IMG/VR virus record: IMGVR_UViG_3300025930_000007
Coordinates: 1-64,000 of that record
Reading direction: 5' to 3' (one strand)
DNA: 64,000 nt
The translations under genes and the position numbers were made by a program. The stretch's first letter is position 1, and each line of letters starts with the position of its first letter. This document shows, piece by piece, positions 41,918 to 62,416 of this stretch. The notes beneath the pieces were generated by a model. It was not told the origin of the DNA. It made no database searches and saw nothing but the letters and a program-made list of their open reading frames with translations.

Positions 41918-41926
41918 AGGGACGAT

Positions 41927-43651: not shown

Positions 43652-43659
43652 GAGGCATC

Positions 43660-44091: not shown

Positions 44092-44094
44092 GAA

Positions 44095-45137: not shown

Positions 45138-45144
45138 TGATGCT

Positions 45145-45576: not shown

Positions 45577-45577
45577 G

Positions 45578-46996: not shown

Positions 46997-47637
46997 GGTT
47001 CATGAACACTATTTTTCTCGGCGGAGTTCAGCCGCGATCTGGCTTCCGGATTGGCCAGCGCTTCGTGATGGGACAGACTCTCACGAAAGCGGACCGCGAT
47101 CACTATCTCGTCGCCGTCAATCGCGCCCTCTCGGAAGCGGATGAGATCGATGCGTGGCTGCTCGCCAATCCGCTCGCAAAGCTGAAGCCCACGGAACTGG
47201 AGATGGCCCAGGGTTCCGATGTCGTCATCTCTCCATTCTTCACCAAGTGGATCAACTTCCAAGCTCAGCGGCCGGGCATGGTCGCCTTCCGGGATCGTCT
47301 TCAGAATGAAGACCCCAGCACTTGGGGATCTCTCTCGGATGCCGAGCACAAGATCTTCGGTTGGGTCAACGTAGTCGACCAGATCTATGGTTCATTCAAG
47401 GCGGATCCCAAGAATCTGACTGCTGGAAGATGGGTAGCTGGCGTAAGGCAGCCGGATCCGGTTTCCACGGGTGCCGCGACGACAGCACCTGCCATGCCCC
47501 TCGAGCCCGTCACAGTCCTGGGCTATGAGCTTCCTCCGACGATGTTGGGGATGCCTACGAAAGTAGCCCTGGTAGTGGGGACCATGGGTTTGATCAGTAC
47601 CGGAGTAGCTCTCTGGGCCCTATTCCGGAAGAAGTAA
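46993..47637 (+). CDS. MGQ-leader membrane protein
   Basis: 'RFVMGQ'; C-terminal TM + RKK. Confidence 0.75.
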   Translation: MRFMNTIFLGGVQPRSGFRIGQRFVMGQTLTKADRDHYLVAVNRALSEADEIDAWLLANPLAKLKPTELEMAQGSDVVISPFFTKWINFQAQRPGMVAFRDRLQNEDPSTWGSLSDAEHKIFGWVNVVDQIYGSFKADPKNLTAGRWVAGVRQPDPVSTGAATTAPAMPLEPVTVLGYELPPTMLGMPTKVALVVGTMGLISTGVALWALFRKK

Positions 47638-47642
47638 GGCTC

Positions 47643-48077
47643 ATGGGCTGCAGCCCTGGCGCTATTTCCTTCGGAAAAGAACTCAGCCAATTCCTTTCCA
47701 ACCTCCTCTACATGAAAGAATGGTGGACCCATGGAGGATGTTGGACGCTTGCCCAAGCACTTCACGAATACCTGGGAGACGATCGCACGGAGCTCTGGGG
47801 TATTGGAAGTCCATTTGCCGGAACTGCGTATCACGTGGCAGTGAAGGCGGATGACTGTTTCTTTGATGCGGACGGAGCTTCTACGCTTGAGCAGATTCTG
47901 AAGCGCTGGAAAAAGAAGTTTCCGGGGCAATACTTGATTGCGAGGAAGCTTTCGGACAATGAAAAGAAGACCCTTCTCTGTAAAGATTCCGAAGACTTCG
48001 CTGTCGAGGAAATGGTCGATCAACTGACGTTAAAGCTAGGCCCATCCGAACTCCTCTGGAGGCGATTTTTCTCTTAA
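47643..48077 (+). CDS. Small protein with papain/transglutaminase-like Cys-His-Asp pattern (candidate protease)
   Basis: 'GGCWTLAQALH', 'YHVAV', 'FFDADG'. Confidence 0.6.
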   Translation: MGCSPGAISFGKELSQFLSNLLYMKEWWTHGGCWTLAQALHEYLGDDRTELWGIGSPFAGTAYHVAVKADDCFFDADGASTLEQILKRWKKKFPGQYLIARKLSDNEKKTLLCKDSEDFAVEEMVDQLTLKLGPSELLWRRFFS

Positions 48078-48084
48078 AAAGGGC

Positions 48085-48211
48085 TTTTCTTACAGGCTTC
48101 CCTATAGTAATATTCAGGCAGTTCCCAAGGCGTCCTCCCCCGACGCCGCAAGAGCTGCCTCACGGCAATCTTGCATTGAACTAAATCCGCCCGCGGAGAT
48201 CCTTTGCAATG
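48085..48211 (+). promoter_or_regulatory. Conserved leader element, copy 9 (promoter match weaker)
   Basis: GGCGTC/CTCCCCC/GACGCC; TCCGCCC at 48186-48192; TATAGT/TAATAT upstream. Confidence 0.7.
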
Positions 48212-48673
48212 TTCTGGCGCGGCGGGATGAGCCCAACGGGCTACTTCAATCGTGACGGATGGTATGGTCGCGGTCCGCTTCTAGGAGCGGCCGATACCGA
48301 GTGCAACGGCGATACCTGCGTCATCATTGCTTCTCGTCTCACTCCAGATCAAGCGAAGGCCTCTTACGAGAAGATGAAGTACGCGATGCTCAATAAGACC
48401 GACTGCATCAGCCAGGGAGTCCCTGGAGATGTGAGTGACTCGGTCGCCTCGAAGCTTGAGAAGGCGGTTCTCGGCATCGAGTCGTCCGCGCCTCTCACTA
48501 GGTCCGAAGCGGACTATTTGGCGAAGTTGGAAGCGTGCGTAGGCGTCATCCCGGCTGCAGTAGTGCCTCGGGGACCGATTGCTGCGCTGCCTAATCCTTC
48601 GTCGCCAAGCCCGCTTCTGATTGGAGCGGGGGCGCTGGCTGTCATCGGGGTTCTTGTGGCGCTTGCAAGCTGA
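48209..48673 (+). CDS. LGA-leader membrane protein, family B
   Basis: 'RGPLLGA'; 'PLTRSEADYLAKLEAC'; C-terminal TM. Confidence 0.75.
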   Translation: MFWRGGMSPTGYFNRDGWYGRGPLLGAADTECNGDTCVIIASRLTPDQAKASYEKMKYAMLNKTDCISQGVPGDVSDSVASKLEKAVLGIESSAPLTRSEADYLAKLEACVGVIPAAVVPRGPIAALPNPSSPSPLLIGAGALAVIGVLVALAS

Positions 48674-48683
48674 AGGGAAGGAC

Positions 48684-48887
48684 ATGAACGTTCTCAGGAT
48701 GCCCGGAGCTCCTCGCATGGGTCAGGCGGCCGCTCCTGCTGCTCCTGCTGTTCCGTCCGCAGGGCCGATCGTCGCCGTGGGCCCCGCTGCCGTGGTGGGA
48801 CCAACCGACGGTTACCTCTGGCCGATCGTCATCGGCGCGCTAGTACTGGGCGGAGTCGCCCTGCTGATCAGCGCCTCTAAGAAGTAG
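48684..48887 (+). CDS. Minimal MGQ-leader membrane protein
   Basis: MNVLRMPGAPRMGQ + Ala/Pro linker + TM + KK. Confidence 0.75.
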   Translation: MNVLRMPGAPRMGQAAAPAAPAVPSAGPIVAVGPAAVVGPTDGYLWPIVIGALVLGGVALLISASKK

Positions 48888-48893
48888 GAGCTC

Positions 48894-49460
48894 ATGAATC
48901 TCGGAACTGTGCGCATGATGCCGATCTCGGGTAAGAGCGCCCGGCCTTCTCTGTTCGGCTTTTCGGCCGATCAGTCGAGGGGATTCTTCGGCTTAGGCGC
49001 GATTGAAACCCCCTCCGATTGGTATCAAAGGGCCAAAGAAGGACTGGCAAAATACGATGATCTCTTCGCTCGTGTAGGCCGGATCGCCGATCAGACGGAA
49101 CGCCAGAACATACAGAATTGGCTCGGATCTCCGATCGTCGACGGCACTCCTGCAAACGCCGCTCAGCAGGTGTTGACGGATATCCGGGAAGACGTGGAGT
49201 CGTTCATTCCTGCGAACGTCAATGCCTATCAGGTATCGAGCAGAACGGAGAAGATCCAGAAGCTCGAATCGATCAATCATGATTTCGAGGCGATGGTGGC
49301 CAACGCATCGGCCAAGGCGGGTGTCTTGCCGGTGACCCACGGCATCGTCCCTCCTCCTCAGCCTGATCCCGGTCCGTCATGGCTCCTTCCGGTCGTGGTC
49401 GTCGCCGGAGCCCTGGGGATCGCGACGCTAGTGACCTACGTCTACGGAGGGAAGGCTTAG
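48894..49460 (+). CDS. LGA-leader membrane protein, family A
   Basis: 'WYQRAKEGLAKYDDLFAR..ESFIPANVNAY'. Confidence 0.8.
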   Translation: MNLGTVRMMPISGKSARPSLFGFSADQSRGFFGLGAIETPSDWYQRAKEGLAKYDDLFARVGRIADQTERQNIQNWLGSPIVDGTPANAAQQVLTDIREDVESFIPANVNAYQVSSRTEKIQKLESINHDFEAMVANASAKAGVLPVTHGIVPPPQPDPGPSWLLPVVVVAGALGIATLVTYVYGGKA

Positions 49461-50027
49461 ATGAATCTCTCCGGAGCTCCGATCGGAAGAAACGCCAACA
49501 TGGGCGGCTCCATGTTCCATAGGTCCGGTTTTGCGCCGGTCATATCCTCTCCCGTGCAGAAGCGCCGGCTGGGAGAGGACGAGCAGAAGTGGTTCACCCG
49601 GGCCAAGGCTGCAGTAGCGGCTTATGACGATCTCTGGACTCGCACGCTGCTGATCAACGACAAGACCTATCGCGAACAGCTTGCGGCGAAGTACCACCCG
49701 AAGCCCGAAGATCAGAATGGGGCATTGTATCGCCGCAATTCGGTTGCGTACAAAGTCTCCGAAGCGGAAAGCTTTACGCCGGTCAATTATAAGATCTTCG
49801 AAGACACCCAGCAGCAGGATAAAGTCACCAAGCTGGAAGAGCTGAACTCCGACTTCCGCAAGGACGTCGAGTACGGTGAGAAGACCTACGGTCTTCTTCA
49901 GGCGCCGGCGATTATTGAACAGACGACGACAACTGCTCCGCCGACGGAGGTTCCTGGTTGGCTGATTCCAGCCGGGATCGGTCTTGGAGCTTTGATTATC
50001 GGTGCTCTGCTGTTCGGCGGAGACTAG
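49461..50027 (+). CDS. LGE-leader membrane protein, family A
   Basis: 'WFTRAKAAVAAYDDLWTR..ESFTPVNY..TYGLL'. Confidence 0.8.
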   Translation: MNLSGAPIGRNANMGGSMFHRSGFAPVISSPVQKRRLGEDEQKWFTRAKAAVAAYDDLWTRTLLINDKTYREQLAAKYHPKPEDQNGALYRRNSVAYKVSEAESFTPVNYKIFEDTQQQDKVTKLEELNSDFRKDVEYGEKTYGLLQAPAIIEQTTTTAPPTEVPGWLIPAGIGLGALIIGALLFGGD

Positions 50028-50036
50028 GAGGAATTC

Positions 50037-50621
50037 ATGATCCCATTGCGGATGGCTTCGATCGGTGGTTTCAACGGTCCCCGCGGAACGATGTTCCACG
50101 GCAGCGCGACTGATTCTTTCAGCGTGGGTCGGATCTCCCTGGGCGAATCCGATCTGGGCGTGAACACGACCGGACTGGCTCGCTATGAGCTGGCGAAGAA
50201 GGAACTCGCTCAGTACGACAGTCTGGTCGAGCGGGTCAAGCGTATCGGCAACAAGGCTGCCCGCGAGCAGATCATCGATACCTACGGCCTGAGCGAGCCG
50301 GACAACAAGGACAAGTCGCTCTACGCGCGTAACGTGGTCGCGTCCGACCTCGCGAACGCGGAGAGCTACACGCCCATCAACTATGACATCTACACGGCTC
50401 CTGGACCCGCCAAGAACCGTCCTGGCAGGCTCCAGGATTGGAACTCGAGTTTCGCAAAAGACGTCAAGTACGCGGAAGACACGTACGGCATCCTGCCGGA
50501 ACCCCAGGTGATCGAGCGGACGACCACCGTCAGCCAGGTTCCGGCCTGGGTGATGCCGGTCACGATCGGTGCGCTCGCGGTGGCTGGTCTGGCTGCCTTG
50601 GGAGTCTTCAGCAAAAAGTAA
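50037..50621 (+). CDS. LGE-leader membrane protein, family A
   Basis: 'YELAKKELAQYDSLVER..ESYTPINY..TYGIL'. Confidence 0.8.
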   Translation: MIPLRMASIGGFNGPRGTMFHGSATDSFSVGRISLGESDLGVNTTGLARYELAKKELAQYDSLVERVKRIGNKAAREQIIDTYGLSEPDNKDKSLYARNVVASDLANAESYTPINYDIYTAPGPAKNRPGRLQDWNSSFAKDVKYAEDTYGILPEPQVIERTTTVSQVPAWVMPVTIGALAVAGLAALGVFSKK

Positions 50622-50649
50622 TGGCCTTATTTTTATAAAGGGGAGAAAG

Positions 50650-51021
50650 ATGATTGCCTTCCAGCCGGTTTACTCGCGTGGTCGGTACATGGGTCAGGCG
50701 GCTCCGGCCGCGGCTCCTGCTCCCGCTCCTGCTGCAGCTCCGGCTGCGCCGGCGGCGGCTCCTGTCGTGCCGATGGTGACCACCACGTCCTACACGGGCG
50801 TTCCGGGCTTCCTCGAGACCGTCGCCGTTCTGGGCGTTTCCGCGGCGGCCGCCTGGACCGGCGTCCGCGCGGGCATGAACAAGAGCACGCCGAAGCTTCA
50901 GCGGGCGGCTGGCTGGGTCGGCGGCGTGGGCGGTGCGCTGCTCGGGCTGCTCTATCTCGGCACCAAGACCGGCATCACGCGCTCGATCGCGCTGCCGCAG
51001 ATCCAGGTGAACCCCGCATGA
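50650..51021 (+). CDS. MGQ-leader two-TM protein
   Basis: GGGAG SD before ATG 50650; 'RGRYMGQ'; paralog of the next gene. Confidence 0.75.
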   Translation: MIAFQPVYSRGRYMGQAAPAAAPAPAPAAAPAAPAAAPVVPMVTTTSYTGVPGFLETVAVLGVSAAAAWTGVRAGMNKSTPKLQRAAGWVGGVGGALLGLLYLGTKTGITRSIALPQIQVNPA

Positions 51022-51410
51022 GACCCTTCACGCCGTACAATCGGACGATCGAGCCGGCCAGGATCGGATTGGGCCAGTTCTCTCCATTCATAAATCCGTT
51101 CGAAGTGACTGGAGATCAGACGCCCACGACGACCCCGTCGCCTTCCGTTCAGGCGGCAGGACCTGCATCCGCGATCAAGCCGATCGTGGTACTGACTGGG
51201 CTCATGCTGACGGGGCTATCGGCCGCCACGGCTTATGTCGGGATGTCCTACGGCATGGACAAGAGCAAGAAGGATCTCCAGCGTGCGATCGGCTGGACGG
51301 TCGGCGTAGCCGGTGTGCTGTCCGGCCTGGTCCGACTGGCCGGAACCACTGCCGCACTGCTCATTCCGGCGCCCACTTCAGCGCCCATGGTCATGGCAGG
51401 GAGACGCTAA
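51018..51410 (+). CDS. LGQ-leader two-TM protein
   Basis: 'RIGLGQ'; 'GMDKSKKDLQRAIGW' matches 'GMNKSTPKLQRAAGW'. Confidence 0.75.
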   Translation: MRPFTPYNRTIEPARIGLGQFSPFINPFEVTGDQTPTTTPSPSVQAAGPASAIKPIVVLTGLMLTGLSAATAYVGMSYGMDKSKKDLQRAIGWTVGVAGVLSGLVRLAGTTAALLIPAPTSAPMVMAGRR

Positions 51411-51413
51411 GAG

Positions 51414-51932
51414 ATGCGCTTCGACCTCGTCGCCTTCCTGGGAGGCCTGACTGTTGGAGCCGCGGCTGCGGCTCTATACGGTGCCACACGGAGCACGAAG
51501 CTCGGCTGGAGTGGCGGCGGTGCAGGCGGTGGTCCTGGCGGCGGCGGTAGCTTCGGAGGCAGTCCCAGCGGCTCGGGGGGCTCATCCTATGCCCCCGGTG
51601 GTACAGGAGTCTATTCTGGACCGCCTGGACCCTTCGGTGGAGGGTTCATGGGACCTAGCGTCCTGGAATCGACGCCTTCTGAGGGAGAAGGAGAGATCGG
51701 GCCGATCGTTTCCGTTCCTCCGATCATTCATGACGGAGATGGTAACGGAATATTCGGAGGCTCATTCTTTGGGGTCAACGTGGCCCCTTGGTTCTGGCCT
51801 CTGAACATCGTGCCCCGGAACGACGAGATCATCTGCAAGAAGATTCCAGGCGATCCTGAAGAGACGATGGTATGTAAACGCAGATATCCGGTTCGAGCGG
51901 TGGCTTGGGGGCCACCCGCCGGCTGGCTCTAG
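51414..51932 (+). CDS. N-terminal TM, Gly-rich protein
   Basis: N-terminal hydrophobic helix, 'TKLGW', Gly-rich linker. Confidence 0.7.
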   Translation: MRFDLVAFLGGLTVGAAAAALYGATRSTKLGWSGGGAGGGPGGGGSFGGSPSGSGGSSYAPGGTGVYSGPPGPFGGGFMGPSVLESTPSEGEGEIGPIVSVPPIIHDGDGNGIFGGSFFGVNVAPWFWPLNIVPRNDEIICKKIPGDPEETMVCKRRYPVRAVAWGPPAGWL

Positions 51933-51940
51933 GAGATCTT

Positions 51941-52288
51941 ATGAGAACTCTTTTTGATACATCTTGGGTTCGCGATGCCTGGTCTCCTAATCTGAGCCTC
52001 GGCCAGGCTGGAACAGGAAACGTCTTCGGCGACATTGCCAATGCCGCCGCTACGGGCACGGCAGCGTACTTCCAGGCCGAAAAGGCAAAGGAAGAAGCCG
52101 CCGCCAAAGAAGCGCAGGCGAAGGCTCAGGCCGCCACCGCGGCCGCGCAGGCTCAGGCAGCGGCGGCTGCCGCCTATGCTTCCGGTCAGAATACTATTCT
52201 TGGCATGTCGCCGGGCACGGCAGCGATTGTAGGGTTGCTCGGAGTGGGCGCCATCGTCGCCGTGGTTATGGCTACGAAGAAGAAATAG
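51941..52288 (+). CDS. LGQ-leader Ala-rich membrane protein
   Basis: AGGAG SD; 'NLSLGQ'; TM + KKK. Confidence 0.75.
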   Translation: MRTLFDTSWVRDAWSPNLSLGQAGTGNVFGDIANAAATGTAAYFQAEKAKEEAAAKEAQAKAQAATAAAQAQAAAAAAYASGQNTILGMSPGTAAIVGLLGVGAIVAVVMATKKK

Positions 52289-52297
52289 GAGACGATC

Positions 52298-52567
52298 ATG
52301 TACCAGTACTCCCGCGCTCCACAGCAGATCGCGCCCCGCAACGGCTACGCGCCGTCGAGCCTCGGTCAGCTCCAGATGAGCCCCACGACTCCAGTCGGTC
52401 GTGAGAACCTCATGAAGCTCACCACGGGCGTCGCTCTCGGCGGCGGCGCTGCGTACGCGCTCTACAACATGCCCGGCCAGTCCAAGAAGAACAAGACTGC
52501 CCTGGGCGTGCTGGCTGGCGGCCTGGCCGCGACGGCGATCCTGAGCCTCGTGGACGCGTTCATCTAA
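52298..52567 (+). CDS. LGQ-leader two-TM protein
   Basis: 'APSSLGQ'. Confidence 0.75.
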   Translation: MYQYSRAPQQIAPRNGYAPSSLGQLQMSPTTPVGRENLMKLTTGVALGGGAAYALYNMPGQSKKNKTALGVLAGGLAATAILSLVDAFI

Positions 52568-52596
52568 GAGCCCTACGAACTTGAGGGAAGCTGCCG

Positions 52597-53439
52597 ATGA
52601 TCGGCAGCTTCCCTAGTTCGATCCAGGTCGCGCAAACAGCGGAGATTCGGATGCTGCTTCACTCCGGACCACGGCTTCTGCCTCCGCTACCACTCCGTCC
52701 TAAGCTCAGCCGGCGCATGGGCCAGATGGTCGCTTTCGATCCCAAAGTAGACTTCAACCCGGATGTCAAGGTGCAGGTTCCCGTCAACGTGGAACTGGGC
52801 GGCCTTCCGCTTTCGGTTGGCCTATTCTTGGGTTCCGGCCTTTCCTTTCTGATTCGGCCTCAGCTTCAGGAAGGATTCGCCAAAACAGCGGCATTGGTTC
52901 TTGGGGCGGGCCTGGCGGTCGCAGGCATCACGAATCTGATCTTGCCGAAGGCTCAGGCCTCGGCACCCGCGCCCGCAGCACCGAGCTCGACCCCAACAAC
53001 AGCAGCTCCCTCGGCTCCTGGCGGCGGCGGCGCCGTCAGCGCGCCGGCTGGAGTTGCGGTTTCGGACCAGGGGATCTTTAACGGCATCAGTGGGCAGGTG
53101 ACTTATCCCGGAGAGGGTGAATCGGTCAATATCTGGCCGTTGGCTTCGACCTATCCGATACGGGTTCAGGTCTACAATCCATCTGCAGCCTCGGCGACCT
53201 TCTATCTGCAGATCGTCGCAAACGAATCCCCGTTGCCATTCGGCAACGCGGCCCGCACGACGTTCCCCCTGCAAGTCACCGTCGGACCTGGTCAGACGCG
53301 AGATATCGACATCAATATGCCGATCTCGACGTGGGCCTGGAACGTGAAGTACGTGGACGTCGCTCTATCCGTCTATAAGCAACGTATGGCTGGGGAGAAC
53401 CCAGTGCTGATGGCGCAACGCTATCTTGTCGTTTCATAG
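52597..53439 (+). CDS. MGQ-leader two-TM protein with C-terminal Ig-like beta domain
   Basis: 'LSRRMGQ'; 'IRVQVYNP..VTVGPGQTR'. Confidence 0.75.
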   Translation: MIGSFPSSIQVAQTAEIRMLLHSGPRLLPPLPLRPKLSRRMGQMVAFDPKVDFNPDVKVQVPVNVELGGLPLSVGLFLGSGLSFLIRPQLQEGFAKTAALVLGAGLAVAGITNLILPKAQASAPAPAAPSSTPTTAAPSAPGGGGAVSAPAGVAVSDQGIFNGISGQVTYPGEGESVNIWPLASTYPIRVQVYNPSAASATFYLQIVANESPLPFGNAARTTFPLQVTVGPGQTRDIDINMPISTWAWNVKYVDVALSVYKQRMAGENPVLMAQRYLVVS

Positions 53440-53453
53440 GAGAGATTACGGCG

Positions 53454-53879
53454 ATGACACTGACGAAACCTTCCGGCTGGGCCCCCTATAAGAAGGGGTT
53501 GGGCACTTCTCGCGTGTCCATGGGCGCCATGTCCAATGCCGAGACACAGATGCTCGGAGTCGCGGTGCTGTCGGCGATCTCCATCGCAGGCATCCATTCG
53601 GCGATCTGCCCGAGCTACTTCACGATGAAGACGTTCGCGTCGCAGCCTGAGGCCAAGGCTCGCTCGATGGAAGGTCTCTGGATCTCTCTGGGTGTGTCGG
53701 CCCTGACGTCGGCGTCCCTCTACTGGGTCTTCAAGAGCTGGATGCCCGTGATCTTCGCCGGCGCCACCTCGCTCCTGCTCTTCGGCATCGGCGTTGCGGC
53801 GACGAATTCTGAGCCGCCGAAGAACATCCCGCCGATCGAGAAGCAGAGCGTCGTGACCGAGTCAGCGGGCATTCCTTAG
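53454..53879 (+). CDS. MGA-leader three-TM protein
   Basis: 'RVSMGA'; three hydrophobic helices. Confidence 0.75.
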   Translation: MTLTKPSGWAPYKKGLGTSRVSMGAMSNAETQMLGVAVLSAISIAGIHSAICPSYFTMKTFASQPEAKARSMEGLWISLGVSALTSASLYWVFKSWMPVIFAGATSLLLFGIGVAATNSEPPKNIPPIEKQSVVTESAGIP

Positions 53880-53905
53880 ACGGCCAATGTATAATCAGAG
53901 GCGCG

Positions 53906-54715
53906 ATGAATGCATGGCTCGGTCCGGTGGCTCTCAGCCTAGCTGATCGGAGACCATCACTAGGCGGCTTCCGTCGGCCGATCCAGGGCATTTATCGGCC
54001 TTCGGCTGCACGGTCGCATCTGGGTGCCACACAGTCTTTCCCACAGATCACGGCTACTCCGGAGGCACCCAATACCATCACCGGCTTCTCTCCAGAGAGC
54101 GCCAAAGATGGCGTAGTGATTGGGATCGGAGGAATCGGGTTGGCTCTGGTTTCCAGGTTCATTCCTGGAGTCGGCGAACCTGTTGCCCTGGTCGGCGGCG
54201 TCGGAATGATCGGTCTGGGTCTCTACAAGATCTACGAAGCAGTCACCGGTCGAGGAACTCCTACGGTTCAGAGCTTCATCACGCCTCCGGATCAGCAGGT
54301 TAGCGACATCTCCTTCATTACCGGCAAGATCCTTGAGCCGTCCGATAAGGGCCAGGCAGATGTAGGAGCCGGGTGGCAGGCGGTCTTTGAAGGCAAACGT
54401 ACCTTCAAGATCAAGTTCATGGTGACGAATACCGGTCCGAAGCCGATGACCGTCCTTGTCGAATTCCGGACGGAGCAGACTTCCAGGCCGTGGGTGGGAG
54501 ATCCCGAGGTATCCAACTTCTCGACCAGCTACGTCCTTGAACTTTCGCCTGGAGAAAGTAAGGTCATCCCAGGCTACCAGCCGGCCAAGGTTCTGGAATC
54601 CATGCTGCAGATCCAGTCCTATAGAAGCCAGGACATTACGGCGACTCTGCTCGCTCGGACTTCTTCGAGCGACACGGGAAAGAAGCTCGACCAGATCAGT
54701 TTTACAGCTTGGTAA
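53906..54715 (+). CDS. LGA-leader two-TM protein with Ig-like domain (paralog of 52597)
   Basis: 'RSHLGA'; 'IKFMVTNTG..LELSPGESK'; TATAAT upstream. Confidence 0.75.
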   Translation: MNAWLGPVALSLADRRPSLGGFRRPIQGIYRPSAARSHLGATQSFPQITATPEAPNTITGFSPESAKDGVVIGIGGIGLALVSRFIPGVGEPVALVGGVGMIGLGLYKIYEAVTGRGTPTVQSFITPPDQQVSDISFITGKILEPSDKGQADVGAGWQAVFEGKRTFKIKFMVTNTGPKPMTVLVEFRTEQTSRPWVGDPEVSNFSTSYVLELSPGESKVIPGYQPAKVLESMLQIQSYRSQDITATLLARTSSSDTGKKLDQISFTAW

Positions 54716-55669
54716 GTGATGAACGAATGGCTTGGTCCTGTTTCTTTGAGGCTCGTTGATCGTGGTCCTCTCTTTGGGGGCTTCGGATCTCGTATCCAGG
54801 ACATCCGCCAGCCACAGCCTTTTCTCGGCCAGGCAAGATTGAAGCAGTCCTATGAACTTGGACGGCCGGTCGCGCATCTGGATCAACCTCCGGACTGCTG
54901 CAATAGTCCGGATGGAACCAAATGCTTCGATCACTCGACCGGCGAATGCATCAATACCTGGAACAGCACTGTGGCAACTCCAAATGCTCCTGATTGCGTT
55001 CAGGACACTCGTGGAGAATTGGTTCATCCCTATTGCTATACCCCTCCTGTAGCTCCCACTCGCATGGAAGGAAGAGTTCGTAGAGTTCCTTTCTTCTCTC
55101 TGGGGGCTTGGGTCAACGATAAACCGGCGAAGTGCTGCAATAGGACTCATCCGGATGGAACGGCCTATCTGGAATGCTGCGAACCACTATGGAATGGTCC
55201 GGGATCAGATCCGAGCTTCCCGAGCTGCGACTCTCCGGATAATCCCTGCCCCTCCACGGGAGCCGCCCCGACTCCGACCCCGACCCCGACTCCGACTCCG
55301 ACTCCGACCCCGACTCCGACTCCGACCCCGACTCCGACTCCGACCCCCACCCCAACGCCAACACCGACACCTACACCAAGCCCGACCCCGACGTCTACAA
55401 CTGGTCCAATTCCAACGGATAATACGACCTCGGCTGGCAATGAACCGATACCGGCTACCGGAGGCGGCTCTTTTGTTCCCGTGCTTCCGCCTCGGCAGAG
55501 CATGACGACGGCATCTCCTCCGACCGGAGCCTTCCCTGGTCAACCATTTGCCGCCATGCGCCCTCCTCAGAAGCCTGTTCCGATCGCCAAGGCTCCTGCT
55601 CCACTTCCGCCGCCATGTCCGCTTGGACCGGTCCCTCTTCGTAAGTGGATCGAAGGCTGCATGGGGTAA
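54716..55669 (+). CDS. LGQ-leader Cys-rich protein with a (PT)n stalk
   Basis: Two CCN-containing Cys-rich modules; about 20 PT repeats. Confidence 0.75.
   Translation: MMNEWLGPVSLRLVDRGPLFGGFGSRIQDIRQPQPFLGQARLKQSYELGRPVAHLDQPPDCCNSPDGTKCFDHSTGECINTWNSTVATPNAPDCVQDTRGELVHPYCYTPPVAPTRMEGRVRRVPFFSLGAWVNDKPAKCCNRTHPDGTAYLECCEPLWNGPGSDPSFPSCDSPDNPCPSTGAAPTPTPTPTPTPTPTPTPTPTPTPTPTPTPTPTPTPTPSPTPTSTTGPIPTDNTTSAGNEPIPATGGGSFVPVLPPRQSMTTASPPTGAFPGQPFAAMRPPQKPVPIAKAPAPLPPPCPLGPVPLRKWIEGCMG
55268..55393 (+). repeat. Hexamer tandem repeat (CCGACY)n encoding Pro-Thr
   Basis: Directly visible; degenerate toward the 3' end. Confidence 0.85.
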
Positions 55670-57398: not shown

Positions 57399-57472
57399 CG
57401 GGGCGTGTTGTAGCGGCAGCAAGCGACGTTCCCAACGTTGAGGTGTGGGTTCGACTCCCATCGCCCCGTCCA
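57399..57472 (+). tRNA. tRNA-Gly(CCC)
   Basis: CGACG-TTCCCAA-CGTTG; GTTCGA; CCA. Confidence 0.9.
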
Positions 57473-57480
57473 ATTTTGCT

Positions 57481-57600
57481 GTGAATCAAGACCGTGGGTC
57501 ACCCAAGGGACGCTGCAAGGTGACATCTGGCCCGGCAGCCGTGGAGTCCTCCCGGCCGGGGAATAACTGAGGACCTAGGCGTCCCACTATCTTGATTCAC
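57481..57600 (+). ncRNA. Unidentified end-closed structured RNA
   Basis: GTGAATCAAGA..TCTTGATTCAC terminal stem between tRNAs. Confidence 0.5.
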
Positions 57601-57602
57601 AT

Positions 57603-57673
57603 AGGCCACGATCCAGCGATCAGCTTGGTCTCCAAAACCGAGCAGTGGGGGGCGGCACCCCGGTGGCCTGCCA
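57603..57673 (+). tRNA. tRNA-Trp(CCA), atypical D and T arms
   Basis: AGGCCAC/GTGGCCT acceptor; CTCCAAA loop; CCA. Confidence 0.7.
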
Positions 57674-57681
57674 GAATTCAT

Positions 57682-57755
57682 GGTCCCTGAGTATGTCGGC
57701 AGTACGCTACCTTGTCACGGTAGAAGGACGGGTTCGACTCCCGTAGGGATCGCCA
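57682..57755 (+). tRNA. tRNA-Asp(GTC)
   Basis: CTACC-TTGTCAC-GGTAG. Confidence 0.9.
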
Positions 57756-57763
57756 AAAGAAAA

Positions 57764-57840
57764 CCCCCGGAGGCCGAAGTCGTGGAGGCGCCGGCTTGTC
57801 ACGCCGGAGAAAGCGGGTGCGACTCCCGTCCGGGGGGCCA
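57764..57840 (+). tRNA. tRNA-Asp(GTC), second copy
   Basis: CCGGC-TTGTCAC-GCCGG. Confidence 0.85.
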
Positions 57841-57856
57841 ACCTTAGTCTCGATAC

Positions 57857-57931
57857 TCCCAGATCGTCTAACTGGTAGGACGACAGACTCTGAATCTGTA
57901 AATTGGGGTTCGAATCCCTATCTGGGAACCA
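57857..57931 (+). tRNA. tRNA-Gln(CTG)
   Basis: ACAGA-CTCTGAA-TCTGT. Confidence 0.9.
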
Positions 57932-57934
57932 GTC

Positions 57935-58249
57935 TTATGCGCCGAGATGCTTGGCGATCAGGGCCTCGAGCTGTTCCCTGGTCATCTCGCCTTCAGTCCG
58001 ATGGACCTCCTGGCCCTCCTTGAAGAAGACGAGTGCCGGCAGGCCGTCGATGTCGTAGCCGTTGGCCGACTTCTTGCACTGGTCGATCCGGGCGCCCACG
58101 ATCAGGACGGAATCGTTGTAATCGTTGGCAGCCTGCTCGATCACGGGCTTGAAGTCGACGCAATGGGTGCATTCGGGGTGCCAGAAGTCGACGATCGCGA
58201 GCGGCGCCCCCAGGACTTCGCTGAAGTTCTTGTCCGTCACGGAAAGCAT
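57935..58249 (-). CDS. Thioredoxin family protein
   Basis: 'IVDFWHPECTHC', 'IDGLPALVFFKEG..R..G'; AGGAG SD. Confidence 0.85.
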   Translation of the reverse strand: MLSVTDKNFSEVLGAPLAIVDFWHPECTHCVDFKPVIEQAANDYNDSVLIVGARIDQCKKSANGYDIDGLPALVFFKEGQEVHRTEGEMTREQLEALIAKHLGA

Positions 58250-58281
58250 TCGAATTCTCCTAATCTCCAAGCATTATACAA

Positions 58282-58356
58282 GCCGGTCTAGCTCAGCAGT
58301 AGAGCGCCCGTCTGAAAAGCGGGAGGTGGCGGGTGCGACACCCGCGGCCGGCACCA
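58282..58356 (+). tRNA. tRNA-Phe(GAA)
   Basis: CCCGT-CTGAAAA-GCGGG. Confidence 0.9.
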
Positions 58357-58363
58357 AATATTT

Positions 58364-58438
58364 GGGGGCATCGTCCAATTGGTAGGACACCAGCATGGCA
58401 TGCTGGGGATCGGGGTTCAAGTCCCCGTGCTTCCACCA
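58364..58438 (+). tRNA. tRNA-Ala(GGC)
   Basis: CCAGC-ATGGCAT-GCTGG; G3:U70. Confidence 0.9.
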
Positions 58439-58446
58439 GAAAACTT

Positions 58447-58522
58447 GCGCAGGAGAGGCACGGTGACCTCACCAGTCTCATAAGCTGGGGATAGCGGGTT
58501 CGACTCCCGCCTGTCGCTACCA
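58447..58522 (+). tRNA. tRNA with CAT anticodon (Met or Ile2), bulged acceptor stem
   Basis: CCAGT-CTCATAA-GCTGG; GTTCGA; CCA. Confidence 0.7.
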
Positions 58523-58538
58523 AGATTCCCTTATACGA

Positions 58539-58615
58539 CGCGGGGTGGAGTAGCCCGGTAACTCGCCAGGCTCATAACCTGGAAACCGCAGGTTCAAATC
58601 CTGCCCCCGCAACCA
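58539..58615 (+). tRNA. Initiator tRNA-fMet(CAT)
   Basis: CGCGGGG..CCCCGCAACCA with C1:A72 mismatch. Confidence 0.9.
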
Positions 58616-58622
58616 AAAATTC

Positions 58623-58748
58623 GGAGGCTGACTGACGAGGGTACTTCGCTGGTTCAATTCCAGCCTGCCCGACTAGGGCGCTCGGATCCCGAGCTCCCCA
58701 GCGGGCAGGCGCCCGATGCCTGGGCACCCCTTGTCTCCAATCGCCTCC
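58623..58748 (+). ncRNA. Y-RNA (YrlA)-like RNA 1
   Basis: GGAGGC/GCCTCC closing stem, GAGGGTACTTC, then T arm, acceptor-like stem and D-like arm. Confidence 0.6.
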
Positions 58749-58757
58749 AAAATCTTC

Positions 58758-58887
58758 AGGGGCTGCAGAGCGAGCTTACTTCACCAGACTCTTAATCTGG
58801 AGGACCTGGTTCGAGTCCAGGCTTCGGCCGAAAGGTCGATGTGGTGTATCGGTAGCACACTCAGTGGCTTGTTCGACAATTGCCCCT
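58758..58887 (+). ncRNA. Y-RNA-like RNA 2 containing a circularly permuted tRNA-Lys(CTT)-like module
   Basis: AGGGGC/GCCCCT stem, TTACTTC, anticodon arm, T arm, GAAA-capped acceptor stem, D arm. Confidence 0.65.
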
Positions 58888-58897
58888 ATAAAAATTC

Positions 58898-59082
58898 GCG
58901 GGCTGATGGATCGAGGTTACTTCGCCCTACAAAACCCCCGAAAAGGAAGGTCCGTCGAACCTTCCTCTACCGCGAAAGCGAACGGGTTGAGCGTGAGGTG
59001 CTTGTGGTAACACGCCGGCGCAAGCCGGAGAAGGAGGTTCGACTCCTCCCAAATCGACATGGCCTTGGCCGTAATTGCCCGC
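58898..59082 (+). ncRNA. Y-RNA-like RNA 3
   Basis: GCGGGC/GCCCGC stem, GAGGTTACTTC, D arm + GCAA-capped stem + T arm. Confidence 0.6.
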
Positions 59083-59091
59083 ATAATATTC

Positions 59092-59182
59092 GAGCGCTGA
59101 CTAGCGGCGTTACTTCGGAGCCTGGGCTCGAAGCCCGACACGGCGAAAGCCGTGGGCAAGTCGCTGCTTAATGATTGCGCTC
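59092..59182 (+). ncRNA. Y-RNA-like RNA 4 (short)
   Basis: GAGCGC/GCGCTC stem, GCGTTACTTC, two small hairpins. Confidence 0.55.
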
Positions 59183-59186
59183 ACAA

Positions 59187-59261
59187 GGGGCCATAGCTCA
59201 GCAGGGAGAGCGCCGGTTTCGCATACCGGAGACGCGAGTTCGATTCTCGCTGGTTCCACCA
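59187..59261 (+). tRNA. tRNA-Ala(CGC)
   Basis: CCGGT-TTCGCAT-ACCGG; G3:U70. Confidence 0.9.
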
Positions 59262-59282
59262 AAATTTAGCATCATCAGACCT

Positions 59283-59358
59283 GGGCCGGCATGTACCGTA
59301 GTGGCGACACTGCCTTGCAAGCAGCGTGTGGTGGGTGCGACTCCCATCCGGTCCACCA
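59283..59358 (+). tRNA. tRNA-Ala(TGC)
   Basis: CTGC-CTTGCAA-GCAG; G3:U70. Confidence 0.8.
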
Positions 59359-59365
59359 AATATTC

Positions 59366-59492
59366 GAGAGCTGCAGATTGAGGTTACTTCTCTACCACTT
59401 ACGAGACGTGGTGTAGCGGTCTGCACACCGGCCAAAAGCCGGAGGTGGTCGTCCGACTCGACCCGTTGTTGCCTTGATCATCAATTGCTCTC
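59366..59492 (+). ncRNA. Y-RNA-like RNA 5
   Basis: GAGAGC/GCTCTC stem, GAGGTTACTTC, D arm + anticodon-less stem + T-like arm. Confidence 0.6.
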
Positions 59493-59496
59493 AAAT

Positions 59497-59583
59497 GGGG
59501 TCGCTTGGAGAGAAGGATCTCCACCTGTCTGTAAAACAGGCGTCCGTTTGGACTAAGCGGCGCGATACCGCACGGCCCCACCA
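59497..59583 (+). tRNA. tRNA-Tyr(GTA)
   Basis: CCTGT-CTGTAAA-ACAGG; long variable arm. Confidence 0.8.
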
Positions 59584-59584
59584 C

Positions 59585-59660
59585 TGCCTCGTCTGTCTAA
59601 TTGGTAGGACGCCGGTCTTTGAAGCCGGAGATCTCGGTTCGAATCCGAGCGAGGCAACCA
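59585..59660 (+). tRNA. tRNA-Gln(TTG)
   Basis: CCGGT-CTTTGAA-GCCGG. Confidence 0.9.
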
Positions 59661-59673
59661 AAGCTCTCTAGAT

Positions 59674-59749
59674 GCGGCCGTGGTGTAGCTTGGTAGCACG
59701 AGAACTTGCCATGTTCTAAGCACGGGTTCAAATCCCGTCGGCCGCTCCA
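59674..59749 (+). tRNA. tRNA-Gly(GCC)
   Basis: AGAAC-TTGCCAT-GTTCT. Confidence 0.9.
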
Positions 59750-59760
59750 ATATTTCCCAT

Positions 59761-59834
59761 CGGCTCGTAGTTCAACAGCAGAACGTTCGCTTGATAAGCG
59801 AAAAACGCAGGTGCGACTCCTGCCGGGCCGACCA
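59761..59834 (+). tRNA. tRNA-Ile(GAT)
   Basis: TTCGC-TTGATAA-GCGAA. Confidence 0.85.
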
Positions 59835-59837
59835 TAC

Positions 59838-59913
59838 GGTGGCCGTGGTGTAATGGTTTGCACATCTGGTTGTGGCCCAGAGGGTGCGGGTTCGATCCCC
59901 GTCGGTCACCCCA
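59838..59913 (+). tRNA. tRNA-His(GTG)
   Basis: G-1, TCTGG-TTGTGGC-CCAGA, C73. Confidence 0.9.
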
Positions 59914-59936
59914 AAAAATAATGCTACAATGGCTGG

Positions 59937-60134
59937 GTGCCATATGTAGAACCGTCCTGGCGACAATGGCCTCAGTGGAGATGGCTCTCCCGGACTCTTT
60001 GCTTCTTCGGAAACCATCACTGGATGAGGAGCAAAAGCCTCCAGAATCTTCCGATCGCCTGCGCGGTCTGCTCGAAGAAGACGAAGCATTTCAATACGTA
60101 CATCAAGCTCGCCAAGAAACACGCCGGGCTGTAG
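59937..60134 (+). CDS. Small Cys/His hypothetical protein
   Basis: 'LCFFGNHHW..CAVC'; its stop overlaps the tRNA-Pro 5' end. Confidence 0.5.
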   Translation: MPYVEPSWRQWPQWRWLSRTLCFFGNHHWMRSKSLQNLPIACAVCSKKTKHFNTYIKLAKKHAGL

Positions 60135-60200
60135 GGTAGCGGCCAACCCGCCTGCTTCGGGAGCAGGAAATCGCGAGTTCGAATCTCGCCAGCCCGACCA
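60125..60200 (+). tRNA. tRNA-Pro(CGG)
   Basis: CCTGC-TTCGGGA-GCAGG. Confidence 0.9.
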
Positions 60201-60203
60201 TTC

Positions 60204-60280
60204 CAGGGACATGGGGAGATAGCGCCCCACCTGTTTCGGATACAGGCATAGGCCCGGTGCGAGTCCGGGGTCCCTGACCA
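60204..60280 (+). tRNA. tRNA-Pro(CGG), divergent
   Basis: CCTGT-TTCGGAT-ACAGG (A37). Confidence 0.75.
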
Positions 60281-60289
60281 AAAACTCAT

Positions 60290-60366
60290 CAGGCACAGGG
60301 TCAGATAGCGGGCCGCCTGCCTTGGAAGCAGGAGATAGACTGGTGCAAGTCCAGTGTGCCTGACCA
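60290..60366 (+). tRNA. tRNA-Pro(TGG), divergent
   Basis: CCTGC-CTTGGAA-GCAGG (A37). Confidence 0.75.
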
Positions 60367-60379
60367 ATCTTTTTAATCT

Positions 60380-60455
60380 CGGGCTCAAGGGAAGGTAGCG
60401 TCCCGCCTGTTTGGGGTACAGGAGCAGGCCGGTGCAAGTCCGGCGAGCCCGACCA
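60380..60455 (+). tRNA. tRNA-Pro(GGG)
   Basis: CCTGT-TTGGGGT-ACAGG. Confidence 0.8.
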
Positions 60456-60462
60456 AAATCAT

Positions 60463-60543
60463 CCGGAGGCAGGTCGGCTGACGGCTGGCTGGGTCGCTCC
60501 CAGCATGACAGCCGGTTGGGTTCGGTTCCCGAACTCCGGTCCA
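60463..60543 (+). ncRNA. tRNA-sized CCA-ending RNA without a normal cloverleaf
   Basis: CCGGAG/CTCCGG-T-CCA ends; one long internal hairpin. Confidence 0.4.
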
Positions 60544-60617
60544 CGGCGCGTATTTCAATAGCAGAATATCTGCGTGACATGCAGAAGATGGGGGTGCGAT
60601 TCCCTCCGCGCCGACCA
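60544..60617 (+). tRNA. tRNA-Val(GAC)
   Basis: TCTGC-GTGACAT-GCAGA. Confidence 0.85.
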
Positions 60618-60640
60618 ATCTTGTTTGCTATGATTTCGCC

Positions 60641-60838
60641 ATGGGACCCAACAAAGACGAAATCCTTCGGAACGCCAAGAAGATGGCCGAGGAAGAAAAG
60701 AAGCGACGTGCCAGCATAGCGACGGAGAAGCCCCTTGGGAGAATGCAGTCCAGGATGCCGATCGGCTGCTGGATGTGGATCCTGGCCGCGGCCGCGCTGA
60801 TCATCTGGCTCATCAAAAAGTACGGACCTGGGATATAA
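60641..60838 (+). CDS. Small membrane protein
   Basis: Charged N-terminus plus TM 'WMWILAAAALIIWLI'. Confidence 0.6.
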   Translation: MGPNKDEILRNAKKMAEEEKKRRASIATEKPLGRMQSRMPIGCWMWILAAAALIIWLIKKYGPGI

Positions 60839-60947
60839 TCCTTGCGACGGCTGAGATGGACCCCTAACTCTGGTGGCGGGGTTTCGGGTCGCGCGTCGTG
60901 AGGGTGTGTGCCTTCACGGAGGGTGTTTCGGGGCCCCGCTCCCATTT

Positions 60948-61023
60948 GCCGGCGTAGTTTAGCAGCTCTGAATGCCAGTTCGGTAAACTGGAGGTGTGGG
61001 GGCAGCACCCACCGCCGGCTCCA
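60948..61023 (+). tRNA. tRNA-Thr(GGT), atypical (C33, non-canonical T loop)
   Basis: CCAGT-TCGGTAA-ACTGG. Confidence 0.75.
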
Positions 61024-61194
61024 GAAATAAAAAACCACGGCGACAGGCCGTGGCATTTGAGGGATCGGCGAATCCCGAAATTGGGATTCGTGCGAACAAG
61101 ATACGGGAAACAATAGCGAGGTGTCCAGAAAAGAAAAAGCCCGGGGAACACCCCCGGGCCTCGAGCGGGATTCGGTGCTTGCAGTGTACCACAT

Positions 61195-61269
61195 GCTGGC
61201 ATAGCTCAATAGTAGAGCACCTGTTTTGTAAACAGGCGGTTGCCGGTGCAAGTCCGGCTGCCAGCTCCA
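61195..61269 (+). tRNA. tRNA-Thr(TGT)
   Basis: CCTGT-TTTGTAA-ACAGG. Confidence 0.9.
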
Positions 61270-61281
61270 AATATTCATCAC

Positions 61282-61355
61282 GCCGGCCTAGTTCAACAGT
61301 AGAATGCTCGCTTCATAAGTGAGAGATCCCAGGGCAGCTCTGGGGGCCGGTACCA
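61282..61355 (+). tRNA. tRNA with CAT anticodon (Met or Ile2)
   Basis: CTCGC-TTCATAA-GTGAG. Confidence 0.75.
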
Positions 61356-61387
61356 TTTCATCTACCCAAAGGAAGGATAGGAACACC

Positions 61388-61564
61388 GTGAAGTACATCG
61401 TGGAGGCCCGCGCCGGCGACCGCTGGGTGACGCTGGGCCAGCCGTACATCCTCAAGGAAAAGGCCATGGCGGCCGAGGAAGCGGCTCTGGAAAGCACGCT
61501 CTGGGAAGACGCCAGGATCCTGGTCGTGAACGATCGGCAGCAGATCGTCAAGATCATCGACTGA
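61388..61564 (+). CDS. Small hypothetical protein
   Basis: GTG at 61388 after AGGA. Confidence 0.6.
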   Translation: MKYIVEARAGDRWVTLGQPYILKEKAMAAEEAALESTLWEDARILVVNDRQQIVKIID

Positions 61565-61568
61565 CCTC

Positions 61569-61660
61569 GGAGGGGTTGGTACATAGGCAGGTCCGCTCGT
61601 TTCGAAAACGAGTAGGTCTCGAAAGGGGCCTTGCCGGTTCGACTCCGGTCCCCTCCTCCA
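61569..61660 (+). tRNA. tRNA-Ser(CGA)
   Basis: CTCGT-TTCGAAA-ACGAG; long variable arm. Confidence 0.85.
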
Positions 61661-61721
61661 GAATTCTCGATTGATGCAGCGCCTCGAGGCCGGTATACTT
61701 TCCTTATTGGGGGGTATCAAG

Positions 61722-61973
61722 ATGATCGGTTACCAGGCTCCTGCATATCGTCCGGCGCAGCGGTCTCAAATGGGCGCGATCTCGTCCATGACCGGCACGG
61801 ACTGGTTGCTGCTGCTCGGCGGCGCCGTGGTCGGCGGCGCAGGCATCAATGGGCTCCGGAATCAGTTCACGGGCCCGGAGAAGGCCAATGCGATCGGCGT
61901 GCTCGTCGACCTGGTCCTGACGGGCGTCGGCCTCACGCTCTTCATCCAGAAGGGCTCACAGGCGATCGCGTAA
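61722..61973 (+). CDS. MGA-leader two-TM protein inside the tRNA island
   Basis: MIGYQAPAYRPAQRSQMGA; own promoter TTGATG-17-TATACT at 61671-61699. Confidence 0.75.
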   Translation: MIGYQAPAYRPAQRSQMGAISSMTGTDWLLLLGGAVVGGAGINGLRNQFTGPEKANAIGVLVDLVLTGVGLTLFIQKGSQAIA

Positions 61974-62093
61974 GGCGGCGAGAATCCATCTGCTCATGCG
62001 ACGGAGATTCTCTAAAAAGAAACACCCAGGGCTCTTCGAAGGAAGAGTCCCGGGTGCGAGAGAGGGAAACCTTTCGGTACTGTAATTATACCC

Positions 62094-62184
62094 GGAGATG
62101 AAGGCAGTGGGCATGCCACCACGTCTTGAAAACGTTGGACCCGGGAAACCGGGGCGGTGGGTTCGAGTCCCCCCGTCTCCGCCA
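62094..62184 (+). tRNA. tRNA-Ser(TGA)
   Basis: ACGT-CTTGAAA-ACGT; long variable arm; G73. Confidence 0.8.
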
Positions 62185-62195
62185 AAAATCAGTGC

Positions 62196-62322
62196 AGATC
62201 GATCCGCCGTTGCTCACTGGCAGCACGAGGAATGCGCGAAGCTGGCGTGTGAATCGTGAAGGGCGTGACGGCTTCCGGAGCCTTGGGGTGCAAACACATC
62301 CTCAGCGGCGGGTCAATCTCCA
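62196..62322 (+). ncRNA. Unidentified end-closed structured RNA
   Basis: AGATCGATCCGCCGTTG..CAGCGGCGGGTCAATCT long terminal stem. Confidence 0.45.
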
Positions 62323-62325
62323 TTT

Positions 62326-62416
62326 GGAGGGGTTGGGCATTGGCAGGCCCACCTCGTTGGAAACGAGACAGCCGGCGCAAGCCGGCTTGCAGGTTCGACC
62401 CCTGTCCCCTCCGCCA
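62326..62416 (+). tRNA. tRNA-Ser(GGA)
   Basis: CTCG-TTGGAAA-CGAG; long variable arm. Confidence 0.85.

Follow-up and report, generated by a model that had tools for sequence, protein, structure and literature searches.

The window analysed here (64,000 nt; GC content, 57.7%) is the first 64 kb of IMG/VR virus record IMGVR_UViG_3300025930_000007, a single linear contig of 266,490 bp with a CheckV completeness estimate of 92%. The record is identical to JGI contig Ga0207701_10000001, has a 236-kb twin (Ga0070686_100000008) and represents an uncultivated virus of 266 kb infecting a soil or rhizosphere bacterium. Shine-Dalgarno (SD)-like sites (TAGGAG, GAGG) ahead of start codons indicate a prokaryotic host. 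Two adjacent genes, designated A and B here, encode proteins that open with homologous leaders of about 40 residues closing in Leu-Gly (LG) and continue as bodies without detectable homology to each other. Coordinates marked G000 refer to the whole record and window coordinates to its first 64 kb; all translations used genetic code 11 only. The features of the two genes, in window coordinates, are as follows.

53897–53901, + strand: SD-like AGAGG, 4 nt ahead of the ATG of A (sequence)
53906–54715, + strand: gene A, 269 aa, with leader, linker, helical (two-transmembrane, 2-TM) hairpin and beta-sandwich (open reading frame (ORF), 14 homologues, AlphaFold2 (AF2) model, fold matches)
53906–53968, + strand: A leader unit 1, aa 1–21 (MNAWLGPV...RRPSLGG), aligned with B and 23 homologues
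53969–54028, + strand: A leader unit 2, aa 22–41, ending HLGA and holding the boundary Leu-Gly (L39 and G40 invariant)
54101–54247, + strand: A helical hairpin, aa 66–114, Gly-rich and hydrophobic (model helices 66–85 and 90–114, hydropathy)
54263–54709, + strand: A C-terminal beta-sandwich, aa 120–268 (model with predicted local distance difference test score of about 75–88, fold matches)
54719–55669, + strand: gene B, 316 aa, with leader, Cys-rich region, PT linker and conserved Pro-rich C-terminus (ORF, 19 homologues)
54719–54832, + strand: B leader, aa 1–38, ending FLGQ, with units 1 and 2 as in A (BLASTP, leader alignment, profile–profile comparison)
54896–55246, + strand: B Cys-rich region, aa 60–176, 12 Cys (invariant Cys columns)
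55250–55393, + strand: B (Pro-Thr)n linker (translation; internal DNA repeat at 55266–55392)
55436–55666, + strand: B Pro-rich, conserved C-terminus, whose Cys...Cys loop contains the leader heptad LGPVPLR again (homologue alignment, weak unit-1 profile match)

A shared leader on unrelated bodies

BLASTP between A and B returned a single significant segment, residues 1–45, with 21 of 45 positions identical (E = 2e-8). Homologues were gathered from metagenomes (14 of A and 19 of B), and in a profile–profile comparison of the two families only columns 1–33 aligned (probability 96.6%, E = 5.6e-10), the bodies yielding nothing. Because both families keep the leader, its likeness in A and B is not due to chance. 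At the DNA level, identity is 62/99 over codons 1–33 and a random 25% across the 300 nt past the boundary. The 33 codon pairs comprise 8 that are identical, 11 that differ synonymously and 14 that differ non-synonymously, such that 11 of the 19 conserved leader residues are encoded by different codons. Selection is therefore at the protein level. Neither a gene conversion of recent date nor a repeat in the DNA accounts for the similarity, with DNA identity at only 63%.

Across an alignment of 25 leaders (A, B and 23 homologues), M1, W4 and the closing L-G are invariant. The A/B leader is disordered, non-hydrophobic and rich in Arg, Gly and Pro, and consists of two LG-ended units rather than one. 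Unit 1 (A residues 1–21) follows M-N-x-W-L-G-(P/Q)-V-x-L-x-L-x-(D/E)-R-(G/R)-P-S-L-G-G, its end being SLGG or LFGG in A/B (consensus also written PSLG(G/A)), and unit 2 (A residues 22–41) follows x4-Q-(G/D)-I-(Y/R)-(R/Q)-P-x3-7-L-G-(Q/A/V). No 19-residue stretch with a mean hydropathy above 1.5 occurs within residues 1–60 of either protein; the first of A begins only at residue 68, and there is none anywhere in B. Natural variants show that the units are separable and that the LG end is nearly always kept: the family A homologue P0007 lacks the end of unit 1, and with it the first LG, and in the family B homologues P0028, P0030 and P0032 most of unit 2 is gone and unit 1 runs into the final LG. 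The exception is P0014, the most distant A homologue, which keeps FLGPVRL without a terminal LG.

The ATG of B starts 3 nt past the TAA stop of A. Leader and linker (residues 1–57) are disordered in the AF2 model of A, and Foldseek matched that model only to generic Fn3/Ig-like sandwiches. B has 14 Cys in total, a middle that varies among homologues and a structure model that is mostly disordered. Towards its C-terminus (residues ~298–316, window 55610–55666), the pattern C-P-L-G-P-V-P-L-R-x-W-x-x-G-C sets the leader heptad LGPVxLR in a two-Cys loop that is invariant in all B homologues, and the unit-1 profile gives a weak second match there, at residues 303–309. Searches of A, B and their neighbours against Pfam and PHROG produced nothing useful, tblastn of A, B and a 574-aa neighbour against 50,697 phage records found no match, and a scan of IMG/VR with the A family found no relatives. 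Kinship between the A body and the similarly built protein at 52597 was rejected, as the two lack sequence similarity. A 396-aa antisense ORF (window 53960–55150, − strand) overlaps A and B; it is most likely spurious, a product of high GC content, because homologues and selection back the + strand genes.

An earlier note on this DNA had proposed that one leader, bounded by LG, was grafted as a portable module onto two unrelated proteins, a two-TM/Ig-like one and a Cys-rich one with a PT stalk. The homology of the leaders is confirmed by both the pairwise and the profile comparison, and nothing was found past Leu-Gly in protein or DNA. Its description of the bodies also agrees with our results, in that they lack detectable homology, A being modelled as a hairpin plus sandwich and B carrying 14 Cys and (PT)n. 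The same leader does stand on unrelated bodies. The direction of grafting cannot be shown; a duplicated 5' gene end or an exchanged body would leave an identical picture.

The order of a gene for a 260-aa protein, one for a 145-aa protein, an A-like gene, B and tRNA genes is conserved on the related contigs L003 and L006, which indicates that the shared leader is old within the lineage. Contig L005 lacks A, and L001 and L002 have A without B. On L003, L005 and the contig of P0024, a 104-aa thioredoxin, on the opposite strand, and a metallophosphoesterase are encoded a few kilobases downstream of B, within or after the tRNA region, and thiol oxidoreductases seem to be a constant companion of the A/B gene cluster.

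Leu-Gly-ended leaders and gene content across the record

A profile of the leader alone, compared with 1.84 billion representative proteins of any length, matched only A-like proteins (including a divergent form, P0136) and B-like proteins, plus one repeat artefact (P0135). This result indicates that the leader is confined to the virus lineage and is not a widespread module. Within the genome, the full-length leader profile is significant for A and B alone, and a profile of unit 1 adds marginal matches to three genes at 131.5–132.7 kb (E = 0.09–0.5). One of them (G000 131564–132100) encodes a thioredoxin with the N-terminus ...GTWLGMVPLVDRPSLGA, followed by a thioredoxin fold (CPHC) and a C-terminal TM helix. 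The conserved leader of this thioredoxin family is WLGQVPLVDRPSLGA; about 25 homologues keep it nearly unchanged, and distant members begin ...AWLGQVSL... or ...PWLGQVRV.... The A/B unit-1 profile matches the leaders of these homologues at E of about 2e-4 (scaled to the six-frame set of one genome), always at the N-terminus, which strengthens the marginal match in the genome itself. Two small genes near the thioredoxin (starts near 132105 and 132384) begin PWLGQ(V/I)PL and are marginal taken alone. Unit 1 thus stands at the front of proteins of at least three unrelated types, and probably of four. The portability proposed in the earlier note thereby gains a third case, the thioredoxin with its C-terminal membrane anchor, which likewise begins with the leader's core unit. 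The surrounding locus (G000 131009–132680) encodes a pair of thioredoxin paralogues (sites CPYS and CPHC), both of which combine an LG-ended leader with a TM helix at the C-terminus, and then the two small PWLGQ(V/I)PL proteins, which are DUF2188-like.

A and B also close a longer series of genes with comparable N-termini, which adds one line to the features of the window.

35328–53879, + strand: 26 further genes upstream of A, 19 with an LG-ended leader and most with one to three predicted TM helices (N-terminal reading, motif count)

The leaders at 35.3–55.7 kb are 14–45 aa long, non-hydrophobic and rich in Arg, Gly, Pro and aromatic residues, and they end in [Leu/Met]-Gly-[Gln/Ala/Glu]. By a strict count, in which [LM]-G-[QAE] had to fall within residues 5–50, the motif is present in 21 of the 28 genes in this region versus 35 of 373 predicted genes elsewhere (9%; binomial P = 1.6e-16). 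When the N-termini were shuffled 2,000 times with composition preserved, the count averaged 3.2 and did not exceed 10. Predicted TM helices, one to three per protein and often C-terminal, occur in 18 of the 21 motif-bearing proteins. Orthologues on the three related contigs L003, L005 and L006 keep the motif, and in most orthologue groups the sequence before it varies in length and content and the sequence after it is usually better conserved. Further motif-bearing genes are scattered over the record: both thioredoxins at 131 kb, three genes at 145.9–147.3 kb, single genes at 124.9 kb and 209 kb, and one for a Cys-rich protein at 229.7 kb. The leaders thus form a virus-wide class on about 25–30 proteins, mostly membrane-anchored and including thioredoxins and Cys-rich proteins, and LG as a boundary, which the earlier note had drawn from A and B, proves to be a general, orthologue-conserved feature of this class. 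A and B are distinguished only by leaders that are still recognizably homologous to each other. Four paralogues in the run (35723, 48894, 49461 and 50037) have in common a 'YDDLxxR...IA(D/N)(Q/K)T' domain and a C-terminal TM helix.

About 56 kb at the start of the record is mainly a single + strand gene run, with A and B inside it, and 21 tRNA genes of + orientation form an array directly downstream of B (window 57399–62416). ARAGORN additionally called a 92-nt 'tRNA' with a 4-base anticodon at 51634–51725, inside the ORF at 51414–51932, which we take for a probable false positive. Collagen-like fibre proteins and glycosyltransferases are among the products of the + strand run, which from ~35 kb onwards is a long series of small proteins without a Pfam or PHROG family match; about three-quarters of the proteins that we examined individually have no family in either database. 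A response-regulator receiver domain protein is encoded at window 31290–31727 (Pfam E = 1e-24; ORF assigned via its N-terminal sequence). Five collagen-like proteins (window 1102–3165, 4109–5077, 8111–10156, 12303–14645 and 16519–17709) have in common an N-terminal domain of ~45 residues, MA(S/I/T)RL(P/S)DGSIQ...PPPAWPF, after which come a Gly run and G-x-y repeats; PHROG labels the two that were scanned as tail fibres, owing to the collagen repeats. None of the largest ORFs (717, 599, 588, 574, 563 and 522 aa) matches a family in Pfam, and PHROG likewise gives no family for the five compared with it. The ESM Atlas yielded only uninformative look-alikes for the 387-aa and 574-aa neighbours.

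The remainder of the record (G000 64–266 kb) has a gene set that is unusual for a bacterial virus. It includes a Ro60/TROVE plus vWA protein (65257–66981), a class-I peptide release factor, a fatty-acid desaturase, two DnaJ proteins, an NIF phosphatase, a protein-kinase-like protein, Thg1, two RNA ligases, a PolX thumb, an ATP-dependent DNA ligase, an SNF2 helicase, a C5 methylase and a tyrosine integrase, as well as enzymes of the GDP-mannose and dTDP-rhamnose pathways and a weak match to the PF12919 glycosyltransferase domain (E = 1e-5).

Interpretation of the leaders

One fixed motif of two to three residues that closes many dissimilar, disordered N-terminal extensions is the signature of a common processing site. 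We accordingly put about even confidence in reading the leaders as targeting propeptides that are cleaved off at LG, in steps made possible in A and B by their two LG units; we infer cleavage, targeting and the identity of the protease alike. The leaders would guide cargo of unrelated chemistry to an assembly site or partner common to all of it, and a single maturation protease would then cut them off at Leu-Gly, tandem LG sites letting the leader come away in pieces.

As a speculative candidate for this protease we consider an M9 (collagenase)-like gluzincin, a stand-alone protein of 272 aa encoded on the − strand at G000 222166–222981. It carries HEFTH...E, with HEFTH at residue 148, and scores 31.5 bits against PF01752 (cut-off, 26). 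Among the ORFs scanned (at least 130 aa outside the window and the main ORFs inside it), its gene is the only one for a Pfam-recognizable protease. M9 collagenases hydrolyse FALGPA (furylacryloyl-Leu-Gly-Pro-Ala) and Pro-Leu-Gly peptides (PMC9304777). Such a specificity would suit P-S-L|G, P-L-L|G and W-L|G-P in the leaders. In both of these M9 substrates the scissile bond is Leu-Gly.

Several observations weigh against processing at LG, or against this protease. Several leaders are as conserved as the mature parts (85% for 48209), which a retained functional N-terminus would fit as well. The LGPVxLR heptad also occurs at the C-terminus of B, where a propeptide role is impossible. The M9-like gene lies 170 kb away from A and B, homologues of its product with 33–36% identity occur on contigs that share few or no other genes with the virus, and a complex prediction of the peptidase with residues 1–60 of A gave no verdict and is evidence neither way. 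In the record, estimated to be 92% complete, no S77 or S78 prohead protease (no match at E ≤ 1) and no C39 (PF03412) or C48 peptidase was recognized. Terminase_6N, TerL_ATPase, HK97-type capsid and nucleocytoplasmic large DNA virus capsid models found no match across the record, and the sole portal match, at G000 119016–119228, is sub-threshold. No capsid, terminase or clear portal gene was thus recognized. These hallmark genes may be too diverged or lie in the missing ~8%, or the particle may be unusual, for example membrane-containing.

The heptad at the C-terminus of B lends support to a rival reading, in which WLGxVxL/LGPVxLR would be a docking motif that is kept after maturation to bind one partner shared by all these proteins (a shell, scaffold or membrane-organizing protein, for example), with LG as part of the epitope or as a flexible hinge. 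The conservation of some leaders throughout and the retention of FLGPVRL without a terminal LG in P0014 point the same way, but most of the 25–30 leaders have only the terminal [LM]-G-[QAE] and composition in common, and hence no epitope, and in most groups a fixed motif follows variable upstream sequence, as at a processing site. We consider a docking motif unlikely on these grounds. The cargos themselves look extracytoplasmic, given the 14 Cys and PT linker of B, the CPHC thioredoxins and the TM helices in 18 of 21 proteins, and the genome encodes a fatty-acid desaturase and two DnaJ proteins; both would accord with a new signal for export or membrane insertion, into or across a host or virus-made membrane, that is removed at LG by a leader peptidase. 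Such a signal would have to act without a hydrophobic h-region, a twin-arginine motif or a prepilin-like G|F-hydrophobic junction, no transporter or signal peptidase was recognized among the ORFs scanned, and we know of no precedent for an LG-ended, non-hydrophobic export signal, which makes this explanation improbable.

Very little room is left for a neutral relic, that is, a leader without a common function that arose by tandem duplication of a 5' gene end. A and B are adjacent and co-oriented, as tandem duplicates would be, and the leader is not found outside the virus lineage; however, the leader is under purifying selection in both families (~33 homologues), synonymous changes dominate at its conserved residues, and unit 1 also stands on non-adjacent genes ~77 kb off. 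Scarcely credible is the view that the similarity reflects a DNA or RNA element (promoter, translation initiation or RNA structure), or that starts were mis-called and the leader is a 5' untranslated region. Among 24 motif codons, seven are ATG and eight are CTG or TTG, which could be hidden starts, but the other nine are the Leu codons CTC, CTT, CTA or TTA, which cannot initiate and have no SD site ahead; SD sites (TAGGAG/GAGG) instead precede the upstream ATGs of the leader genes, and these ATGs abut the preceding stops. The leaders are therefore translated, and a start codon at LG was rejected on codon use and SD placement. A nucleic-acid element is further opposed by the 11 synonymous substitutions at conserved residues, by in-frame indels among homologues and by a DNA identity too low for a recent repeat.

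If the leaders are targeting propeptides, they would be a sequence tag that marks the assembled or processed proteome of an uncharacterized lineage of very large soil viruses, virus maturation would be seen to use a protease of new specificity (Leu/Met-Gly), and foreign cargo could be loaded by means of a short portable tag of ~20 residues, a use to which the T4 capsid-targeting sequence has been put. By its make-up (chiefly membrane proteins, with the addition of membrane-anchored thioredoxins and a protein with 14 Cys), the cargo set points to a virion, or a compartment induced by the virus, of an unusual kind. A bolder version, which we regard as a long shot, is a sorting and maturation code of the lineage's own: at least 25 proteins, most of them tail-anchored in a membrane and the others membrane-anchored thioredoxins or rich in disulfides, would be sorted by LG leaders to a membrane or assembly compartment specific to the virus, and the M9-like protease would then cut Leu|Gly, in a membrane-containing giant bacterial virus with poxvirus-like maturation (Gly-site processing and virus-encoded thiol oxidoreductases).

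Comparison with known systems

The closest counterpart in principle is the capsid-targeting sequence of phage T4, a conserved element of internal proteins that otherwise differ widely; it takes them into the scaffolding core, after which it is cleaved away (PMC3012670). Both systems place a short N-terminal leader on unrelated cargo of one virus; that of T4 (internal proteins, Alt) is 10–20 aa long and ends at the motif of the maturation protease (PMC3012670; PMC5694885). The two leaders have no sequence similarity, and the T4 site, (L/I)-x-Glu, is cut by the S77 protease gp21, whereas the motif here is [L/M]-Gly-[Q/A/E], no S77 or S78 protease was detected in the virus, most cargos are membrane proteins and cleavage is putative.

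Giant phages (phiKZ, 201phi2-1, SPN3US) offer a second parallel, as their neighbouring head genes have identical or similar propeptides, with several motifs per propeptide. The SPN3US neighbours gp53 and gp54 keep identical N-terminal propeptide residues although the rest has diverged; giant-phage propeptides may hold several cleavage motifs, which are thought to help clearance, and many proteins are processed at one motif (PMC5694885). Pairs of the gp53/gp54 type are diverged paralogues (34% identity) and their motif is (A/S/G)-x-Glu, whereas the bodies of A and B are unrelated.

Glycine sites are used by several viruses of eukaryotic hosts. In adenovirus ((M/L/I)xGG|x), poxvirus (AG|x) and African swine fever virus (GG|x), one Gly site ends the N-terminal extensions of many virion precursors, membrane-associated ones included. 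Those sites are cut by clan CE cysteine proteases and differ in the position of Leu, and the one model of that clan searched, C48 (Ulp1), found no match here. Double-glycine (C39) leaders of bacteriocins and nitrile hydratase leader peptides (NHLP), which end in Gly-Gly/Ala, resemble the LG-ended leaders in being N-terminal and non-hydrophobic, and unit 1 of A/B ends in SLGG or LFGG; by contrast, Gly is followed by Gln or Glu in the general motif here and the leader closes in LG[Q/A], the cargos are proteins of 90–570 aa and not peptides, and neither a C39 peptidase nor an ABC exporter was found. The A/B leaders differ from Sec or Tat signals in lacking a hydrophobic h-region, and from type IV prepilin-like (class III) signals in having polar residues after LG (TQSFPQ in A, ARLKQS in B).

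A resemblance, and only that, exists with BclA and BclB of the Bacillus cereus group, whose N-terminal motif, approximately L-[IV]-G-P-T-L-P-P, is superficially like WLGPVxL. The BclA-type domain consists of this motif followed by a collagen-like region and attaches to BxpB/ExsFA of the basal layer. An N-terminal motif that different surface proteins have in common is reported to be required for incorporation into the exosporium and to be coupled to N-terminal proteolysis (cited in PMC4674009). The virus provides a similar context, with many collagen-like proteins and rhamnose-pathway or methyltransferase genes, but its collagen-like proteins have another N-terminus, the leader proteins carry no collagen repeats and their bodies are membrane or Cys-rich proteins. 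By analogy, the LG-ended class is best read as a variant of the propeptide and targeting principle of T4 and the giant phages, in a lineage without characterized relatives.

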